DNA from: Macrostomum hystrix
Taxonomy: Eukaryota; Animalia; Platyhelminthes
DNA length: 64,000 bases
Reading direction: 5' to 3'
Assembly: GCA_950097015.1 (NCBI GenBank)
Contig: CATNEN010000008.1
Coordinates: forward strand, 1,984,001-2,048,000
A program made the translations under genes and the position numbers. Under the pieces are notes generated by a model. It was not told where the DNA came from. It was given only the letters and a program-made list of their open reading frames with translations, and did no database searches. Shown piece after piece: positions 1 to 14,013 of the stretch. The first letter of the stretch is position 1. Each line of letters starts with the position of its first letter.

Positions 1-2480
1 AATAAACAGCCTTCACTTCAGCTCGGTACCAGCCGCCTTCGAACAATCCGATGCAAAACTGTCCGACCATCGGCTCGATCAGCAAGTCGGCTGATGTAGC
101 CACAGCATCAATTTGACTTTGCAAGCTATTGAGCGCATCTAGGTCACTGCACGACTGGATCCACAAGTGTAGCCTAGAGTTGTCATCAGCCATAGGCAGT
201 GCAATGCTCACAACTCCCGATATGGTATTGCCGGGTTTACACTTCTGAATCGTTGGAATCTTTGATTTGTTGGCTTCTGATTCATCAATGGTTTCAACTA
301 GCGTAGCTGTGGAGTCTACAATGCTTACGGCGGAAGTCGTTATTGATTCTAAAACACTCATTTCGGCCGAAACAGTTGGCAAATCACAAGGCGTAGAAAA
401 CTCAATGATGAAGTCAATCTCTCCGAGTTCGACAAGCTTGTCACAGGCCTCTGCAGAAAAGCAACAACCGTCTGGCGAAACGATGATGCACTCAAAAGCA
501 AAGGCGTCGCGATACAGATCGGCACATTGCGGAAGTGCTTTCAGTTGCAACTCGTCTAGAGTGCCTTCCTCCTCATTGCCGTAGTCGATAAACAGCACTC
601 GCACAGAATCAGAATAAACAGCCTTCACTTCAGCTCGGTACCAGCCGCCTTCGAACAATCCGATGCAAAACTGTCCGACCATCGGCTCGATCAGCAAGTC
701 GGCTGATGTAGCCACAGCATCAATTTGACTTTGCAAGCCATTGAGGGCATCTAGGTCACTGCACGACTGGATCCACAAGTGTAGCCTAGAGTTGTCATCA
801 GCCATAGGCAGTGCAATGCTCACAACTCCCGATACGGTATTGCCGGGTTTACACTTCTGAATCGTTGGAATCTTTGATTTGTTGGCTTCTGATTCATCAA
901 TGGTTTCAACTAGCGTAGCTGTGGAGTCTACAATGCTTACGGCGGAAGTCGTTATTGATTCTAAAACACTCATTTCGGCCGAAACAGTTGGCAAATCACA
1001 AGGCGTAGAAAACTCAATGATGAAGTCAATCTCTCCGAGTTCGACAAGCTTGTCACAGGCCTCTGCAGAAAAGCAACAACCGTCTGGCGAAACGATGATG
1101 CACTCAAAAGCAAAGGCGTCGCGATACAGATCGGCACATTGCGGAAGTGCTTTCAGTTGCAACTCGTCTAGAGTGCCTTCCTCCTCATTGCCGTAGTCGA
1201 TAAACAGCACTCGCACAGAATCAGAATAAACAGCCTTCACTTCAGCTCGGTACCAGCCGCCTTCGAACAATCCGATGCAAAACTGTCCGACCATCGGCTC
1301 GATCAGCAAGTCGGCTGATGTAGCCACAGCATCAATTTGACTTTGCAAGCTATTGAGCGCATCTAGGTCACTGCACGACTGGATCCACAAGTGTAGCCTA
1401 GAGTTGTCATCAGCCATAGGCAGTGCAATGCTCACAACTCCCGATATGGTATTGCCGGGTTTACACTTCTGAATCGTTGGAATCTTTGATTTGTTGGCTT
1501 CTGATTCATCAATGGTTTCAACTAGCGTAGCTGTGGAGTCTACAATGCTTACGGCGGAAGTCGTTATTGATTCTAAAACACTCATTTCGGCCGAAACAGT
1601 TGGCAAATCACAAGGCGTAGAAAACTCAATGATGAAGTCAATCTCTCCGAGTTCGACAAGCTTGTCACAGGCCTCTGCAGAAAAGCAACAACCGTCTGGC
1701 GAAACGATGATGCACTCAAAAGCAAAGGCGTCGCGATACAGATCGGCACATTGCGGAAGTGCTTTCAGTTGCAACTCGTCTAGAGTGCCTTCCTCCTCAT
1801 TGCCGTAGTCGATAAACAGCACTCGCACAGAATCAGAATAAACAGCCTTCACTTCAGCTCGGTACCAGCCGCCTTCGAACAATCCGATGCAAAACTGTCC
1901 GACCATCGGCTCGATCAGCAAGTCGGCTGATGTAGCCACAGCATCAATTTGACTTTGCAAGCTATTGAGCGCATCTAGGTCACTGCACGACTGGATCCAC
2001 AAGTGTAGCCTAGAGTTGTCATCAGCCATAGGCAGTGCAATGCTCACAACTCCCGATATGGTATTGCCGGGTTTACACTTCTGAATCGTTGGAATCTTTG
2101 ATTTGTTGGCTTCTGATTCATCAATGGTTTCAACTAGCGTAGCTGTGGAGTCTACAATGCTTACGGCGGAAGTCGTTATTGATTCTAAAACACTCATTTC
2201 GGCCGAAACAGTTGGCAAATCACAAGGCGTAGAAAACTCAATGATGAAGTCAATCTCTCCGAGTTCGACAAGCTTGTCACAGGCCTCTGCAGAAAAGCAA
2301 CAACCGTCTGGCGAAACGATGATGCACTCAAAAGCAAAGGCGTCGCGATACAGATCGGCACATTGCGGAAGTGCTTTCAGTTGCAACTCGTCTAGAGTGC
2401 CTTCCTCCTCATTGCCGTAGTCGATAAACAGCACTCGCACAGAATCAGAATAAACAGCCTTCACTTCAGCTCGGTACCAG
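1..2480 (-). repeat. 612-bp coding tandem repeat (204 aa = one extended Tudor domain plus linker), >=4.05 copies
   Basis: aataaacagccttcacttcagc starts at 1, 613, 1225, 1837 and 2449. Identity ends after 2480. Copies read identical except for 3 substitutions in copy 613-1224 (positions 739, 746, 835). Confidence 0.98.
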
Positions 2481-5221
2481 TTACCTTCAAAAAAACCTAG
2501 GCATAGCTCACCAATTTTAGGTTTATTAATTTTTATGGCACTGGTGGCAACAATTTCAAGCTTGTTTAGTAGTTCATTTAAGCAAGTTAGTTCGCTGCTC
2601 AGTTGAATCCAGAGATGCAACTGTTTTGAATTACCGCTGTTGGGTTTGGCGATGCTTGTAACTGCTCGGAACCAACCGCTAAGCTTCGCTTGACTAACTC
2701 TTGCTTTGCAATGCGGATGCGTTTCGGTGGGTAAGTGATTGGCATCCATATTTAAACTCATTGTAAATTCGGATTCTGCAGAAACTGGATTGCTAAGACT
2801 TGCTATAGTTGGCAGATCTGACAGAATATCTTGCTCGTTAATCTCTAATCTTACACCAATTGGATTAGATTCTGCTTCGATGACGGTTACACAAAGCGGC
2901 ATGTTGATGAGCTTTCTGAAGCTTGTAATCGCTTCTTCTCTATAATTACGCAGATCGCAACCCACCAGTCTACAGTGAAGTGCGAATGCACAACAGGTAA
3001 GAGCCTCTTGCGAAATTTGTAGAAGAAAGCCTGGCGGAACAAGTGCAATGTTACCATAATCGACAAACTTCACCACAAACTGCGCATTTTCAAGATTTGC
3101 TATGAGAGCAGCACGGTACCATTTGGAGTCCTCCGTGTACATAGCAATGCATGGCTGACCAGCATACAAATCTCCGTTAAGCTTTTCCGCTTTCTTAGCA
3201 ACTTCTTGGACGTCTGCCATGGTCTTACGAAGGAGCTGCGAATCCTCGTCAAGTAGGAGATAAAACGAACAAAGATTCTCAATATGTGTGATGCTTGCGG
3301 TGAATGATTGGCTAGGTGGGGACTTTGCTACGTAGGCTATTTTTAGTGGTGTAAGACGTGTGTCGTTAGAACAAAATGATCCAGACAAGCCACTAGTCGA
3401 ATTGGTAGGCTCAACGAAGTTTTCGACACCGTTCGTTTCAATTGTGAGGTACTCTGAACTTTCAGTGAATAAAACGCTGGCGGAAATGAAATGGCTGGAA
3501 ACCGAATTAATTCTTAGACTACAGCGTGCTCCTGTCAGATTTGATTTGACTGTGTTCTGGAAAGGCCCGAAGTCGTCGATGACAATTTTAATACAGCACA
3601 CTGGAATCCGGCAGATTTTCTGAGAGGCGGTAAACACGTTACTTAGGTGAATATTTTCGACAGTTCCATAGTCGACTGCGAAAATCTGACAGATGTTTGT
3701 ACTAAAGTTAAAACAACATAGTTCACCCCGATAAAGACAGTCGTTATTATTCTGGCGGAAAACAACGGGCGTACTAGCAATGGCCGTTGATGTCGATATC
3801 GGCAAAAAATCGAGTCGTGAAATGCCGCTCATCATAGAAGAAATCGCATCAAGCACAGGCTTGTCTTTCTCCAGTTGAAAATAAGCTGCACCGGGCATTT
3901 CTGTAGCGCAGCAAAGTGCAGAATAAGAGCATCCGGCTTTCAGGCTAGTGAAGTTGTAAGCAGCAAAAGGAGATGATAGCTCTAATCTGTCTATTTGATT
4001 GCATTCGTTGACAGTTGCGGCGGAATGGCCGTTTGCATTCGCAAAAGAATCTGGAGAATTTGGAGCACTTAAAACTGACAGCGGAATTTCGCGTCTCTCG
4101 AGCCACTCTGAAAGACGCATTCGACTGTTGCATAACGTTATCTCGGCAGTGACAAAGCCTGAAGAATCAGAACTCTGGATTGGTGTCACAGACACATTGG
4201 AGGATCCAAGGAAGTCCTTGATTGCAAGTAGCTGATCCTCAGACAATCTATCCTTGATTCGTTGGTCAATCAAAAAGGCAGTAGCTATAGGAGGATACTG
4301 CAAACAGCTAGGAATGGAAAAGCAGTCACTAACGTCGATAATCGCATTAAAGCCATAGTCAATAAAGAGGACTTTGAGCTGCTGGTTGATCTTACACAGA
4401 AGATTCGCTCGAAAAAACTTGCCGCCCGACACGACACCAAAAAAAGTTGGTAGGCTTTCTAAATCATGAGAAAATCGAGAATTGGAAAGTACTTCCAGCT
4501 GGTGTTGCAGCTGATCGAGTCTCTTTGCATCAGAAATTTTTTGAACATAGACAAATCCTTCCTGCGAAACGTGGCTAACGATCCCAAGGAAAACTTTTGC
4601 AGAGCAATTTACATCAATCTGATTCTGAGGCTCTAAATTTAGCGTCTTTGTTGCGATTCCAAACTTGATGTTGATTGACCTGCAGGTTATTCGATTATAA
4701 AGTTCAACTGGAATACGATTTAATTCGCTACAATCTGATTCCTCAGGGACAAATACTGCTTGAAAAGTTTCGCCGGAGTCAGAACTGATGTCAGTCCATA
4801 AGAGCTTGATCTGCTCTGGCTTCCAGCCTTCCTCGGGTTCCTCAATCAATCGTAACTTGCAATGCACTGCTTGATTACATAAAGACTTCAGCTCATCTGG
4901 CAGCACAAACAATGATTGCATTGGGGAAACGACGATTTCACCCAAGTCGACGAGCAAGATCTCGACATTAGGAAGTGCAATACTTATTACCTCTCCACGG
5001 TGAACTTCTTTCAAAAGGACAACAGCAACTAATTGGGCAACATTAACCACAGAATGCAGTTTAAGTAGACCATTCTTGTGATAATCAGTCAGCTGAGCCC
5101 TTAAATTTTGCAACTTCTGTCCTCCATCATCATTGAACTGAAGCCAGAAGTCAGTGGGGCTTATATAGTGTGAACAACGCACAGCTATTTCTGTTGCAGG
5201 ATCTATTTCAATTGGTCGCAT
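1..5221 (-). CDS. Multi-Tudor-domain protein (Tudor/TDRD6/TDRD15-like germ-granule scaffold), one giant exon, 3'-partial (continues beyond base 1)
   Basis: Hand translation of the minus strand gives an open frame from ATG at 5221 to base 2 (1740 codons, no stop), just inside an acceptor ttccctttcag| at 5227/5226. Tudor D-x-G motifs are all in one frame: LVDLG (~4945), FIDYG (~4357), AVDYG (~3670), WYRA..FVDYGN (~3058), then WYRAEVKAVYSDSVRVLFIDYGN at ~2420, 1808, 1196, 584, plus a ninth domain cut at the window edge. The ORF track omits it because no stop lies in the window. An upstream exon cannot be excluded. Confidence 0.92.
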   Translation of the reverse strand, partial: MRPIEIDPATEIAVRCSHYISPTDFWLQFNDDGGQKLQNLRAQLTDYHKNGLLKLHSVVNVAQLVAVVLLKEVHRGEVISIALPNVEILLVDLGEIVVSPMQSLFVLPDELKSLCNQAVHCKLRLIEEPEEGWKPEQIKLLWTDISSDSGETFQAVFVPEESDCSELNRIPVELYNRITCRSINIKFGIATKTLNLEPQNQIDVNCSAKVFLGIVSHVSQEGFVYVQKISDAKRLDQLQHQLEVLSNSRFSHDLESLPTFFGVVSGGKFFRANLLCKINQQLKVLFIDYGFNAIIDVSDCFSIPSCLQYPPIATAFLIDQRIKDRLSEDQLLAIKDFLGSSNVSVTPIQSSDSSGFVTAEITLCNSRMRLSEWLERREIPLSVLSAPNSPDSFANANGHSAATVNECNQIDRLELSSPFAAYNFTSLKAGCSYSALCCATEMPGAAYFQLEKDKPVLDAISSMMSGISRLDFLPISTSTAIASTPVVFRQNNNDCLYRGELCCFNFSTNICQIFAVDYGTVENIHLSNVFTASQKICRIPVCCIKIVIDDFGPFQNTVKSNLTGARCSLRINSVSSHFISASVLFTESSEYLTIETNGVENFVEPTNSTSGLSGSFCSNDTRLTPLKIAYVAKSPPSQSFTASITHIENLCSFYLLLDEDSQLLRKTMADVQEVAKKAEKLNGDLYAGQPCIAMYTEDSKWYRAALIANLENAQFVVKFVDYGNIALVPPGFLLQISQEALTCCAFALHCRLVGCDLRNYREEAITSFRKLINMPLCVTVIEAESNPIGVRLEINEQDILSDLPTIASLSNPVSAESEFTMSLNMDANHLPTETHPHCKARVSQAKLSGWFRAVTSIAKPNSGNSKQLHLWIQLSSELTCLNELLNKLEIVATSAIKINKPKIGELCLGFFEGNWYRAEVKAVYSDSVRVLFIDYGNEEEGTLDELQLKALPQCADLYRDAFAFECIIVSPDGCCFSAEACDKLVELGEIDFIIEFSTPCDLPTVSAEMSVLESITTSAVSIVDSTATLVETIDESEANKSKIPTIQKCKPGNTISGVVSIALPMADDNSRLHLWIQSCSDLDALNSLQSQIDAVATSADLLIEPMVGQFCIGLFEGGWYRAEVKAVYSDSVRVLFIDYGNEEEGTLDELQLKALPQCADLYRDAFAFECIIVSPDGCCFSAEACDKLVELGEIDFIIEFSTPCDLPTVSAEMSVLESITTSAVSIVDSTATLVETIDESEANKSKIPTIQKCKPGNTISGVVSIALPMADDNSRLHLWIQSCSDLDALNSLQSQIDAVATSADLLIEPMVGQFCIGLFEGGWYRAEVKAVYSDSVRVLFIDYGNEEEGTLDELQLKALPQCADLYRDAFAFECIIVSPDGCCFSAEACDKLVELGEIDFIIEFSTPCDLPTVSAEMSVLESITTSAVSIVDSTATLVETIDESEANKSKIPTIQKCKPGNTVSGVVSIALPMADDNSRLHLWIQSCSDLDALNGLQSQIDAVATSADLLIEPMVGQFCIGLFEGGWYRAEVKAVYSDSVRVLFIDYGNEEEGTLDELQLKALPQCADLYRDAFAFECIIVSPDGCCFSAEACDKLVELGEIDFIIEFSTPCDLPTVSAEMSVLESITTSAVSIVDSTATLVETIDESEANKSKIPTIQKCKPGNTISGVVSIALPMADDNSRLHLWIQSCSDLDALNSLQSQIDAVATSADLLIEPMVGQFCIGLFEGGWYRAEVKAVY

Positions 5222-6739
5222 GTGATCTGAAAGGGAATCAATAAAAACCTAATTAAATACATAAAGCTTTATTGTGCCATATATGAATATCTAAAATATA
5301 GCTCATTTTTATGATAAATTAGCATAAGGTTTGTTCTCAACAAAGGAAAAGTTGCATGTGAACAATTATTAACAATATTTGACATCAAACTCCAGGATTG
5401 CAAAGTTGTGGAAAGCTTCCTTAAAAATGATAATTCAAGAATTAATAAAAAGTAATTAAAGCAAAAGCTAGCTCCTGTGTGTACATTAATGATTTTAAGA
5501 GTGCCTGGCAACATTTTAATAATATAGCAAATCAATTAAGGCACATAGAAGCATAAAAGTTAGTAAATATAGTCTTAATAATTGACTTTCTCTTTAATTT
5601 TGCATCATTGCAATCCAAATACTCCCATGTGTAAAATAAACTAAAAATAATTTTTGACTTAATTAAATCATTTCACACCTACAGAATATGTTTATTTATT
5701 TTTTCTTTAAAAATTTCATCACTAAATATCAGAACCTGATATTGCATGCACAAGCAGATAAAAACATATTTAAGAACAAGTCTTTCCATTTGGTGTTAGG
5801 AGAAACAGTAGATATATAATATAAAAACAATTTTTATATTGATATTAAGCTTACTATATTTGGTACAAGGATTTATAACTGAAGGATTTTTTACAGTATG
5901 TTTCAGAGGCTTTGCTTTACCTAATATTCCTCCCTTTAGCTAACATTCTAAGAATATAGGTATTTGGAATAGAAACCAAAACTTTAAGTCAACAAAACAA
6001 GACACTAATTTGTAAGATCAGGGCTAAGCAAGCTCCTTTAACTACAAATATATATATAGTTGGTCCTATATCTACTATGTATCTAAATGGTACTCACTAT
6101 GAAATTTACTAGACTTATTAATGAAAAAGGGGAAATGACCTTAATATTAGAAGTGAAAATGAAAATAGTTTTATGCTTATAATATGAAGTCATAGACAGG
6201 AAATATTGACTTAAATATTTACAAAATATTACTATCACACCAAAAGCATTATAAAAACTAACAATTCTAGAGTGTTATGATAAATTAAAATTACATAAAT
6301 ATTAGGTTTATATAAAAAATGCTTGAGATATATATGATGTGTTATAACTACATTAGTCATTATTAGGCTAAGTTACAAACATGTTTAAGAAGGTAAACAC
6401 AATTCTGAAATGTTTATGAACAAAAGGTTGAATGATTTAAGCAAAAAATATAGTAGGGTTTAAACTGTATGGTCCAATAATTTACATATTCAGGGGCAGA
6501 AATAGTAGATAGAGATCAAGGTTTTAGTAGCTATGGAGTATATATGGTATAAGTGCTTGCACTATGTGTTGTACCTAGTAGAATATTGAGACTAGGTCAA
6601 TGCATTTTAATATACATTGATTCCAGTATACTTAGTTCCAATTCTAAAGTCTGACTGGCACTGATTGATCATTTTTAAGTGGTCAACTTGTTTGCAGTCA
6701 CTACACTGTTTACAAACCATTAGAGGCTTCATAATGTTC

Positions 6740-9208: not shown

Positions 9209-12200
9209 AATACTCCAGAGTACTGTTCGAGCATTGCCATCAGCGAGTTGAGCGCAGATGTGTTCAGAGATCTGCCAACCGCTCAGCGATTTGCCTTGGA
9301 CATTGGCGGCTCCCTCTCTAAGATTGCGTATCAGAGTAAGAGAAAGTGGCGAAAATCGTTCGTCATTTATGATGACAGTGCTGGCGCAGATTCGCACCTG
9401 TATAGTACACAGGAGCTGGAAAAGGAGGCCGACTGTTTGCACTTTATTAAGTTTGAGACGCGACTGCTGGAGAACTGCTTGGACTTCATCTATGAGAATC
9501 TTAAGGTGCGCGGACACCCTCGATCCTAGCAAGCAATTTCTTATTAGATCCCTTCATGTCGAAGCGTCGTACAATGAGATTTATTCGTGTCGAAACATCC
9601 AGCCTCCGTGATTCTTTTATGTGGAAACATCCAGCCTCCGTGATTCTTTTATGTGGAAACATCCAGCCTCCGTGATTCTTTTATGTGGAAACATCCAGCC
9701 TCCGTGATTCTTTTATGTGGAAACATCCAGCCTCCATGATTCCTTTATGTGGAAACATCTAGCCTCCATGATTCCTTTATGTGGAAACATCCAGCCTCCG
9801 TGATTCTTTTATGTGGAAACATCCAGCCTCCGTGATTCTTTTATGTGGAAACATCCAGCCTCCGTGATTCTTTTATGTGGAAACATCCAGCCTCCGTGAT
9901 TCTTTTATGTGGAAACATCCAGCCTCCATGATTCCTTTATGTGGAAACATCCAGCCTCCGTGATTCCTTTATGTGGAAACATCCAGCCTCCATGATTCCT
10001 TTATGTGGAAACATCCAGCCTCCATGATTCTTTTATGTGGAAACATCCAGCCTCCGTGATTCTTTTATGTGGAAACATCCAGCCTCCATGATTCCTTTAT
10101 GTGGAAACATCCAGCCTCCATGATTCCTTTATGTGGAAACATCCAGCCTCCATGATTCCTTTATGTGGAAACATCCAGCCTCCATGATTCCTTTATGTGG
10201 AAACATCCAGCCTCCATGATTCCTTTATGTGGAAACATCCAGCCTCCATGATTCCTTTATGTGGAAACATCCAGCCTCCATGATTCATTTATGTCGAAAC
10301 ATCCAGCCTCCGAGATCGTAATCTCATAGCTTCCGTCCCCAGAGATTCATTTGTCGAAACATTCATCCTCTCGAGTCTCGAATCCTCACGCAGCCCTCCG
10401 TACTCACGCAGGGATCAGACGGCAGCGGCCTTGAGGTTCTGCGCAAGTCGCCACTTCGAGTTACAGGCGGAGGCGCCTATAAATACAGAGCGGCCATCGA
10501 AGCCAAGCTGGGCTGTATTGTTGAAAAGGAAGACGAAATGGCCTGCTTAGTGCGCGGCTGCGCTTTTATGCTCAAGCACATACCTGGCGAGTTGTTCTCT
10601 TATGACCACGACAGCAGTCCACCGTGCTGCTTCGCAGACGAGTTGACAGACGGCGCGGAGCCATTCCTATTGGTTAATATCGGATCCGGAGTGTCTATGC
10701 TCAAGGTAATTGAGCAAATTTTTTAATTAAAATTTGTCAAAGAACACAATTTAGTATTTTGTTTTATTTTAGGTGGAGAATGAGACTACATTCAGTCGCA
10801 TTGGCGGCACATCGTTAGGCGGCGGCACCTTCTGGGGCCTCGGCTCCTTATTAGCTGGCACGTCTGATTTTGACGAACTGTTAGAAGTGGCGTCGCAGGG
10901 CGATCATCGCAATGTCGACATGCTTGTTGGCGACATCTATGGTGACGTCAGTGCGGGAAGTGTTCACGGTCTCTCATCTGACATTATCGCATCATCGTTT
11001 GGCAAAGCTATGAAGTGAGAATTCCTCATTTCTCATGTTGTTCTGCTTCTCTACTATCTCACATATGACTGCAAAGATAGGAGTTTCAAGCTGTCTTCCC
11101 TAATGGAGCTTTGTTTTATACTCATAACCTTGCGACTATAGCAGCGTTGTACATTCGGGAGAGCTTATTATTGAGTATACTTATTCGCCTCATGTGGAGT
11201 CGAGTGGGGGTGAGTGGCAGAGCGGTTAACGCGTTTGCCTCTCGCACCACGGTCCCTGAGCTCGATTCTGTGGCATGGCCACATTTATTTGGGGTGCAGC
11301 CACAGAGAAAAGACTAAGGGGCTTGTCGTGCAATTTACACCCTTGAGATGAGAAAGTCAGGGCAGATGTGCACACCTGTGTGAGCGTATGCCTGCGTACA
11401 GTATCTGTACGCGTGTGTGCTCAGGAGTCAGCGATGATGTGCCACTGCCCGCTGCCCTCCTGCAAATATAAATTAATTATTTTCCTGTGGAGTCGAGAAT
11501 CGAACCCCCGACCTTCAAGTCGTGAGTCGGACGCTCTAACCTCTAGGCTACAATTCCTTCGAATATATACGACGGCAACGAAAAAACGCGCATTCCCAGA
11601 TCCGACTCCAAGGATTTCTCAAAGCCGGACCTGCTGCGCAGCCTTTTAATCACCGTCAGTAACAACATCGGCCAGTTGGCATTCCTCTATGCTAGCAAGC
11701 ACAAATTGAAGCGCATCGTGTTTGCCGGCTTCTTTATTCGCGGCCACCTGCTCACAATGCGCACGCTAACCTATGGCGTTAATTTCTGGTCTCGCGGCAG
11801 CGTTAAAGCCTATTTCCTGCGTCACGAAGGCTACCTGGGCGCCATCGGCGCCTTCGTGCGCGGCGTCGAAAAGGACAGGCGAACCGGCGTCCTAACTGGC
11901 TCGTGGGCTGAGAATCTGTGCACAAGCAGCTCTTTCGATGTTAAAAGCTGGCACAGCCTTGCCGCTTTGGAATTGGACAAAAGAAAAGAGTTGACGGACT
12001 TTCCTCTTCTGCGAGATCGACTAGACTATGCGCCGGACACGTGGGATTTAAGTCAGGTGCGATGCCGAGCTGCTGGTTGTCCCACATCCCGAGATCCCTC
12101 TACACTTTTCTTCCTTCCAAATCCCCTATCTGGCCTTTACTAATCTCCCAAATCATTTAGATCCATTCTATGGCCTCAACCGCTCTCCAAAATCCCTTCG

Positions 12201-14013
12201 ATCCGTTCTATGGCCTCAACCGCTCTCCAAAATCCCTTAGATCCATTCTATGGCCTCAACCTATCTCCCAAATCCCTTCGATCCATTCTATGGCCTTAAC
12301 CACTCTTTCAAATCCCTAACTTTCACTCTTCTCCCAAGTCCCGTAGATCCCTCAGCCGACCTTCAGTTATTTCCTATGTCACTCAGATTCCACTTTAAAC
12401 TTTCATTTATGCTCCCTAATCCCATAAAACCCGAAATATTATTCCCCCATCCCTCAGGACTGGGCGGCCCGAGAGTATTGGCTAAACTGCTTCGAAGGCT
12501 CCATCAATAGGCACCAGAGCCGCGCGGTTGCCAGCCAGCCGGACAGTCCGAGTGCCGCGGAGAGAGGCGAAGCCTTCCGCTCGGCTTATCAGAACTTTTT
12601 TAAAGAGGCAAGAGCCAATCCGGTGGCGTTTGGCCAGCTCACAGTTCGGCGGATACTGGATGTACAGGTTGGCACTGGCTTTGCGATGGGATCATTTGGG
12701 TAGCATCCTCATTCGGGATAATTGTGATATTCAGTATCATGGGATTTTTTCAATAATGTATTTTTCAAAATTTTCCCGAATTTTTGTTAACAACGCGGCA
12801 GGATTTTGCAACCCTCAGGAGCACTGTTTGCGCGAGTCCGGCTTCCCGGATCCCTATTGGGAATTGAAGCGGGAGGAGAACGAACTCGCCCTGAATGGTC
12901 TGCAGGCTCGGCTGACCTGCCTGGCGGCCCTGCCTGTGGAGGAGCTGCCCGCCGCTTTGATCTGCGGCCTCCTCGGCGGCAACGTGTTCGACTGGGGCGC
13001 CGGCCGGGTGGCGCAGCTGCTGGCCGAGCGGGGTCGCGACTTCGGCCTAGACCAAGCAATGCAGCAGCTGCAGCCGCGGCCGTGGCTTGTTGACGATCTG
13101 GACGCTTGGACTGATCGATTGTTGGCCGGTGTCTACCGGTGCGCCGTGGTGTTCGTTGACAACAGCGGCTTCGACCTGCTGCTCGGCGTGCTGCCCTTTG
13201 CCATCGACCTACTGGACCGCGGCGTCAAGGTTTGCTTGCGTCAGCTCTGCACCCGAGATCCAATCTGCAAGCTGCACCCCAGATCCAATCTGCAAGCTGC
13301 ACCCCAGATCCAATCTGCAAGCTGCACCCCAGATCCAATCTGCAAGCTGCACCCCAGATCCAATCTGCAAACTGCACCCCAGATCCAATCTGCAAGCTGC
13401 ACCCCAGATCCAATCTGCAAGCTGCACCCCAGATCCAATCTGCAAGCTGCACCCCAGATCCAATCTGCAAACTGCACCCCAGATCCAATCTGCAAGCTGC
13501 ACCCCAGATCCAATCTGCAAACTGCACCCCAGATCCAATCTGCAAACTGCCGTGATCGATTCTCCTAAGGTACACAGACGCTAATCTGTCAAATCATGTC
13601 CCATCGCACCCCAGGTAATACTCGCTGCTAATCACGGCCCAGCCCTCAATGACGTCACCATCTTTGAGTTGCGCGCCCTTATGCGCCGAGTGGCCAGTTT
13701 CGTGCCGCTCGTAGCCGAAGCCCTGACCGGCGGACGCCTCCTGCTGGCCGGAACTGGCAGCTCCTCGCCCTGTCTGGACCTTCGCTGCGTCAGCGTCGAA
13801 GTGGCCGACGCCTGTCGTAGAGAAAACGTTGACCTAGTCGTTATCGAAGGCATGGGAAGAGCTGTACACACTAATCTGTACGCCAAGTTCTCTTGCGACT
13901 GTCTCAAACTGGCCGTTCTCAAGAATGCCTGGCTGGCTGATCGGCTTGGAGGCGACCTGTTTAGCGTCATCTGCAGCTTCGAGCCAGCATCGGCCCCTGC
14001 TACACATAGTTGA
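9209..14013 (+). CDS. PANK4: Pantothenate kinase 4 (type II PanK domain + C-terminal DUF89/ARMT1-like phosphatase domain); start codon unresolved
   Basis: Phase-consistent GT-AG exons 9209-9505, 10412-10705, 10773-11014, 11600-12056, 12458-12667, 12819-13229, 13615-14013 (770 codons). Motifs: [89 protein letters not shown]. In-frame TGA at 9203 lies upstream of acceptor ttgacag, so a short first exon is missing from this model. Confidence 0.96.
9591..10312. repeat. 32-bp minisatellite (ggaaacatccagcctccgtgattcttttatgt), ~22 copies, PANK4 intron 1
   Basis: Direct tandem units with g/a and t/c variants. Confidence 0.97.
11205..11485 (+). mobile_element. SINE family A copy (internally deleted) in PANK4 intron 3
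   Basis: Full head gggggtgagtggcagagcggttaacgcg...gagctcgattc. 12-bp TSD tgtggagtcgag at 11193-11204 and 11486-11497. Confidence 0.88.
11486..11553 (-). mobile_element. SINE family B tRNA-like head only
   Basis: Reverse complement matches the head of the 63060 element (gtagcctag...gtccgactcacgacttgaaggtcgggggttcgattc). Confidence 0.85.
12139..12310. repeat. 40-bp minisatellite, ~4 copies, PANK4 intron 4
   Basis: ctctccaaaatcccttcgatccattctatggcctcaaccg-type units. Confidence 0.85.
13247..13550. repeat. 25-bp minisatellite (gctgcaccccagatccaatctgcaa), ~12 copies, PANK4 intron 6
   Basis: Direct tandem units; they generate the spurious overlapping ORFs at 13087-13584. Confidence 0.97.

Follow-up and report, generated by a model that had tools for sequence, protein, structure and literature searches.

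In current models, piRNA granules are organised by multi-Tudor scaffolds via multivalent binding. The closest described systems are Drosophila Tudor as well as vertebrate TDRD6 and TDRD15, all of them germ-granule scaffolds, which possess many extended Tudor (eTudor) domains and no other Pfam domain and are encoded by a very large coding exon. In-frame arrays of near-identical folded domains, homogenised by unequal exchange, are represented by human LPA kringle IV type 2 and by the zinc-finger arrays of PRDM9. The copy number of these two arrays varies among individuals, and their domain type and biology differ from those of the Tudor array described below.

We analysed a stretch of 64,000 nucleotides of the Macrostomum hystrix genome (hereafter the window), which a search of the own genome located at C8:1984001-2048000. 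It contains a gene that, like those of Drosophila Tudor and TDRD6/TDRD15, encodes many eTudor domains and no other Pfam domain on a very large exon. To place this gene among known proteins, domain identities were calculated by pairwise alignment of segments around the DYG motif. For comparison, 20 other multi-Tudor proteins from the database matches were examined; with one exception, their domains showed median identities of 28-37% within a protein, and no pair exceeded 54%. Unlike Tudor, TDRD6 and TDRD15, whose domains are approximately 28-37% identical, the M. hystrix gene comprises six domains which are 99.5-100% identical at the DNA level and probably evolve in concert. The exceptional protein was TDRD6 of the darter Etheostoma cragini (P0021), harboring three tandem Tudor units with 79-83% protein identity. 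Hence, the assertion of a preliminary description of this DNA that Tudor repeats are normally divergent within TDRD proteins agrees with the low medians, but darter TDRD6 provides a milder precedent of duplication. Its tandem units were likewise duplicated recently; however, there are only three of them, they are less similar, and evidence for homogenisation across species is lacking.

Database matches of the N-terminal 900 residues comprised two proteins of Macrostomum lignano with 51-55% identity and otherwise distant Tudor proteins only. The latter were a mix of TDRD1, TDRD15, TDRD6 and RNF17, with identities of 21-35% outside the flatworms, values too low to single out one TDRD subfamily. 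A word search with the 204-residue unit of the array disclosed no protein of 112-357 residues and no fragment models from other species. Neither this gene nor a concertedly evolving Tudor array was described in the literature that we searched. We concluded that the gene product belongs with the Tudor-only scaffolds exemplified by TDRD6 and Drosophila Tudor, although its repeat dynamics are unusual. To call it a candidate for an undescribed system, as had been done initially, was thus an overstatement.

The gene is encoded on the minus strand, where one open frame reaches from window position 5248 to the window start (1749 codons within the window), while none of the plus-strand frames is open. 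Including the neighbouring DNA, the full frame spans 2052 codons (contig 1983093-1989248). Judged from the sequence context, the start codon of this exon, termed exon A, is probably the ATG at window 5221-5219. It is situated directly 3' of an acceptor-like site (TTTCAG), with approximately 4 kb of AT-rich DNA further upstream. In M. lignano, this Met is conserved. The ATG is perhaps preceded by a trans-spliced leader. Exon A ends at a GTATGT donor about 873-907 bp past the window start. It is followed by approximately 2.05 kb without coding potential and by a second open frame of 1158 codons ending in a stop (exon B). Seven in-phase AG sites are candidates for the intron acceptor, of which the first, located right after an in-frame stop, is the simplest. 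Not a single stop codon interrupts the 6.1 kb of exon A or the 3.5 kb of exon B. Searching the genome (220,453,370 bases in 42 contigs), we found the unit family confined to this one locus; the next-best Tudor genes were 36-38% identical.

Some further features of the locus were observed. In both species, exon B opens with a conserved tail of an eTudor unit without a Tudor core ahead of it (L012:5881-6030, minus strand; L013:18145-18330, plus strand). The intron between exons A and B seems to be placed where the core is missing, or the real splicing differs from the simple pattern. Divergently oriented to the Tudor gene and separated from it by the AT-rich DNA of approximately 4 kb, a PANK4-like gene is located at window 9248-14013 (plus strand), in which exons for a Fumble pantothenate kinase are followed by an ARMT1-like damage-control phosphatase domain. 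Minisatellites with units of 32 bp and 25 bp appear to be intronic in this gene. Altogether, approximately 25 minisatellite and microsatellite arrays are scattered over window 9588-63876; they have periods of 3-89 bp and up to 143 copies, and many of them are strongly strand-skewed; tandem repetition is very common in this region.

The domain content of the two exons was determined separately, so that the totals given here do not derive from one joined protein. Pfam revealed Tudor-type families only in both exons. The TUDOR family (PF00567, curated cut-off 23 bits) scored 374.8 bits in the in-window part of exon A (8 stretches) and 178.8 bits in exon B (5 stretches). By means of a profile made from the unit alignment together with a motif listing, approximately 15 Tudor-like domains were counted in all, i.e., those of exon A plus five in exon B. 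Within exon A, the unit profile recovered a weak domain T0, the domains T1 and T3, and six array-type domains named R0 to R5. T2 of M. hystrix gave no match with the unit profile and was recognised by its DYG motif and by its one-to-one pairing with T2 of M. lignano in a tree, which had starred support. According to the motif listing and the alignment, all five cage positions are intact in nine domains (T3, R0-R5, B3 and B4), while the C-terminal domain as well as B1, B2, T1 and T2 have degenerate cages. Six of the nine predicted working pockets are thus contributed by the array. Table 1 summarises the features located in the window.

Table 1. Positions of the Tudor gene features within the window
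Feature	Position	Strand	Characteristics
Giant coding exon A, in-window part	1..5221	-	Open frame of 2052 codons; Pfam TUDOR 374.8 bits, 8 stretches
Array part in the window	1..2497	-	Lag-612 identity; 0 or 3 differences per unit; sharp edges
Variant unit V	662..1273	-	Three marker sites; same variant recurs in the unit starting at window 49 and running off the window
eTudor R4, first part	1..271	-	R4 and R5 continue outside the window
eTudor R3	290..883	-	Array unit; profile match
eTudor R2	902..1495	-	Array unit; the one modelled and searched; PDB matches TDRD1 and SND1
eTudor R1	1514..2107	-	Array unit; cage F-Y-F-Y-N
eTudor R0	2126..2722	-	Unique old head; array-identical from the Trp of WYRAEV on; cage intact
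eTudor T3	2771..3355	-	Unrepeated; cage intact (Y-Y-F-Y-N); one-to-one orthologue in M. lignano
Tudor T1	4343..4621	-	Degenerate cage (Asn replaced); one-to-one orthologue in M. lignano
Tudor-like T0	4850..5119	-	Weak (E 7.7e-4, home-made profile)

To characterise the repeated unit, its 204 residues were compared with PDB sequences, which yielded TDRD1 TD3 (4b9w, E 3e-8) and extended Tudor chains of SND1. Aligned to the eTudor domains of SND1 and TDRD1, the unit carries F, Y, F, Y and N at the cage positions. The Asn after the DYG motif is counted as the fifth cage position of eTudor domains reading symmetrically dimethylated arginine (sDMA). The known cage residues of SND1 (F740, Y746, Y763 and Y766; PMC10860161) have F, Y, F and Y as their counterparts in the unit, which also retains the Asn that follows DYG. 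The full aromatic cage which had been ascribed to each unit was thereby corroborated, as the alignment gives F-Y-F-Y-N in all six array domains. The motif quoted for it (GLF-EGGWYR...LFIDYGN) is present in each unit, and the location of the units within one coding exon was confirmed as well.

An AlphaFold model of the unit, based on a nine-row alignment, was of moderate overall quality (mean pLDDT 71.8, TM about 0.55), with values of approximately 90 in the Tudor core. In the model, SN-like strands and helices flank the Tudor barrel, as is typical of the eTudor fold of about 180 residues; the order is strand-strand-helix, barrel, strand-helix-strand-strand. At residues 1-9 and 183-204 the pLDDT fell below 50; in the model, these ends of the unit would fit a flexible linker between neighbouring units. 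The top matches obtained by Foldseek were all extended Tudor domains (TDRD1 TD3, Tudor eTud11, SND1 and PAPI), which aligned over 166-180 columns with E values from 7e-10 to 1e-7. Complexes with sDMA peptides were among them, namely TDRD1/MILI, Tudor/Aubergine, SND1/PIWIL1 and PAPI. Thus, Tudor eTud11 and TDRD1 TD3, both bound to sDMA peptides of PIWI proteins, have the same fold as the flatworm unit. The eTudor structures of SND1 and TDRD1 (3omc, 5m9o and 4b9w) share its fold and its cage at an identity of 22-24%.

The extent of the array was determined by a repeat search and a lag-identity script. TRF was run with 500 as the longest period and therefore did not detect the 612-bp array. The repeat search revealed four full copies of the 612-bp unit at window 1-2448, spaced by exactly 612 bp and 99-100% identical, and a partial fifth match from window 2449. 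In the own-genome search, one further full copy and a partial copy of 197 bp were found just upstream of the window; weaker copies (74-80%) lie approximately 5 kb further on. An identity scan at lag 612 placed the near-identical block between window 2497 and 815 bp past the window start, corresponding to 3312 bp or 5.4 units. This block is at least 99.5% identical at the DNA level and spans six extended Tudor domains. The preliminary description, according to which the unit is repeated in frame at least four times and runs off the window, was therefore correct in this respect.

Read in gene order, the block consists of a junction unit, a reference unit (R), a variant unit (V), again R and V, and a partial unit. 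Differences are scarce, amounting to 0-3 per 612 bp between array units. The junction unit shows six differences, all of which reside within its first 17 bases, and the final partial unit diverges after base 234. Exactly three sites distinguish V from R; they lie at window 835, 746 and 739 and cause the exchange I>V, the silent change GCG>GCC and the exchange S>G. These are the three changes previously noticed in one copy; all could be located, and a second V copy lies just outside the window. The order R, V, R, V suggests that a block of two units was copied in the last step. Both edges of the block are sharp. At the Trp of WYRAEV in R0, the identity per 30-nt bin rises from 10-17 to 27-30, and it drops again past the ACDKLVE motif of the last unit. 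Within the array, identity at the edges equals that at the centre. Old, unique sequence makes up the head of R0 and the tail of R5.

An alignment with orthologues of sister species had been proposed at the outset; the comparison with the orthologue of M. lignano disclosed the same gene plan with six cores, homogenised separately. Both M. lignano proteins contain runs of near-identical units of approximately 210 residues. At the M. lignano locus (L013), exon A is open over 2076 codons and is followed by an intron of approximately 5.9 kb and an exon B of 1211 codons. The intron is inserted at the matching point, the tail of the last array unit. The M. lignano array has a period of 630 bp and comprises 5.55 units with 0-10 differences per unit. 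Array-type cores are found at the same gene position in exon A of each species, six in number.

When all units were placed in a maximum likelihood tree, each of T1, T2, T3 and the C-terminal Tudor domain grouped with its counterpart from the other species (starred support). The array units, in contrast, formed one clade per species, supported by 85/100 in M. hystrix and 91/86 in M. lignano. Between the species, array units share 59% protein identity, and synonymous sites are saturated (pS 0.72-0.9). The corresponding pN values were 0.28 over the unit, 0.12 in the Tudor core and 0.29 in the non-repeated N-terminal region. As pN is well below the saturated pS and lowest in the core, the gene is under purifying selection which is strongest on the reader core. 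The one-to-one relationship of the flanking domains, the clustering of the array units by species and the synonymous saturation together indicate concerted evolution or parallel amplification. Uniformity of the units was reached long after the two species had separated. The notion that the block is very young or actively homogenised was supported.

Further evidence came from exon B of M. lignano. Three of its units contain long, abruptly bordered tracts in which 28-30 of 30 positions match the exon A array. These tracts lie across the 5.9 kb intron from the array and surround a degenerate unit. Such mosaic tracts would be expected from gene conversion and suggest that exchange is continuing in M. 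lignano. In M. hystrix, a comparison of exon B with the array revealed no conversion tracts, the longest exact match being 18 nt. We also noticed that in exon B of M. lignano (L013:18083-21715, plus strand) an ancestral single unit seems to have received an insertion of one array period.

Taken together, we regard it as likely that the locus is a single-copy scaffold gene with a six-domain block that evolves in concert in each species and whose product is predicted to be a multivalent sDMA-reading scaffold of PIWI granules. Its protein would have approximately 3,100 residues and about 15 Tudor-like domains, with window 1-5221 as the first giant exon. The block would have begun when two paralogous units, then next to each other, underwent unequal exchange; such a starting pair is proposed because old, unique sequence persists in the head of R0 and the tail of R5. 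Adjacent 612-bp units may have generated the block, and may keep it uniform, by unequal exchange or gene conversion. An ancestral array of six units, kept uniform by exchange, would then be a standing feature of the gene. We favour an ancestral array because position and number are equal in the two species and because conversion tracts occur; the comparison covers two species, whose block edges and periods differ.

The main alternative is an independent and very recent amplification in each species, starting from two diverged neighbouring units of the ancestor and being a neutral by-product of a repeat-prone genome, with neither a long-standing array nor selection on valency. The sharp, fully identical edges of the M. 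hystrix array and the lack of conversion with exon B would also fit a single, very recent amplification. Moreover, the block edges lie at different residues (17 residues before the FIDYG motif in M. hystrix versus 65 in M. lignano), the periods of 612 and 630 bp differ as well, and about 25 minisatellite arrays are present in the window alone. The equal number of six cores could be a coincidence, for which exon B provides an example. Each species has four units there, yet a degenerate unit occupies the second place in one species and the third in the other; the four units thus go back to different events, and equal counts can arise by different routes. Against independent amplification stand the same number of cores at the same gene position in both species, the mosaic tracts which point to continuing exchange in M. 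lignano, and the intact frame with the Tudor core as the part most conserved between the species. On balance, we consider this explanation somewhat unlikely.

The reading of an ancestral array in concerted evolution can be extended by selection on the array itself. The six-unit block would then be an old and selected feature of Macrostomum, its number being held near six, while conversion would keep the six pockets identical and in lockstep with the RG/RA cluster of the PIWI partner, and any change in the number of units would adjust granule assembly in germline and stem cells. We judge this extended version to be distinctly unlikely. The initial idea of a copy-number dial on condensation is so far purely hypothetical; the presence of six cores in both species argues, if anything, against free copy-number variation.

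An artefact of assembly or polishing, the true locus having fewer or more divergent copies, is very improbable. The genome of an inbred line was assembled with canu from PacBio CLR reads and polished with Arrow and Pilon, and Iso-Seq data exist (PMC10468722). Multi-mapping short reads can homogenise repeats, and short-read polishing could have erased some true differences between the copies. However, typical CLR reads are much longer than the block of 3.3 kb, the three marker sites were not flattened but alternate in the order R, V, R, V, and the frame is intact over 2052 codons. In addition, two M. lignano gene models from separate sources contain the same kind of array, and no second copy exists elsewhere in the assembly. 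We likewise give hardly any credence to the assumption that the array is present in the DNA but absent from a working protein, by being spliced out or by decay of the gene: the intron acceptor is ambiguous, with seven in-phase AG sites, and past the array the two M. lignano models no longer agree, but these models do contain array units, there are zero stops in 6.1 kb plus 3.5 kb, dN is far below the saturated dS with the Tudor core being most conserved, and the two species, although deeply diverged, share a collinear gene plan.

As to the function of the protein, potential partners were sought in the same genome. PRMT5 is present, as are Argonautes of the AGO clade and at least one gene of the PIWI clade (L020:1103-4027, minus strand, corresponding to G000:C30:1319103-1322027), whose first open frame starts with four RG/RA arginines. 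A second, similar PIWI-clade locus lies at C30:2062543-2064939. N-terminal RG/RA clusters are the usual target of PRMT5 and the usual ligand of eTudor domains. The N-terminal RG/RA cluster of the PIWI-clade protein is therefore a candidate sDMA ligand of the array. By homology, each intact unit would bind symmetrically dimethylated RG/RA arginines, most likely those in the N-termini of PIWI proteins. Each unit would consist of an eTudor domain and a flexible linker of approximately 30-45 residues. Nine predicted pockets, six of them identical and on flexible linkers, would bind RG/RA clusters multivalently. On sequence grounds, a multivalent PIWI-binding scaffold is plausible, and the protein would act as such a scaffold in perinuclear granules of germline and stem cells. 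In M. lignano, Macpiwi1 functions in the germline and in neoblasts (PMC4604429).

The kind of protein encoded by the gene is already known; what is new is that the same six-domain block was homogenised independently in two deeply diverged Macrostomum species. The locus is a clear case of folded reader domains which reside in one exon and have probably undergone concerted evolution across a deep species split. Transgenesis and RNAi work in the genus (M. lignano). In model multi-Tudor proteins each domain differs, and valency and specificity are therefore inseparable. Six identical reader units offer a clean system in which the number of identical sDMA readers can be related to PIWI binding and granule formation.
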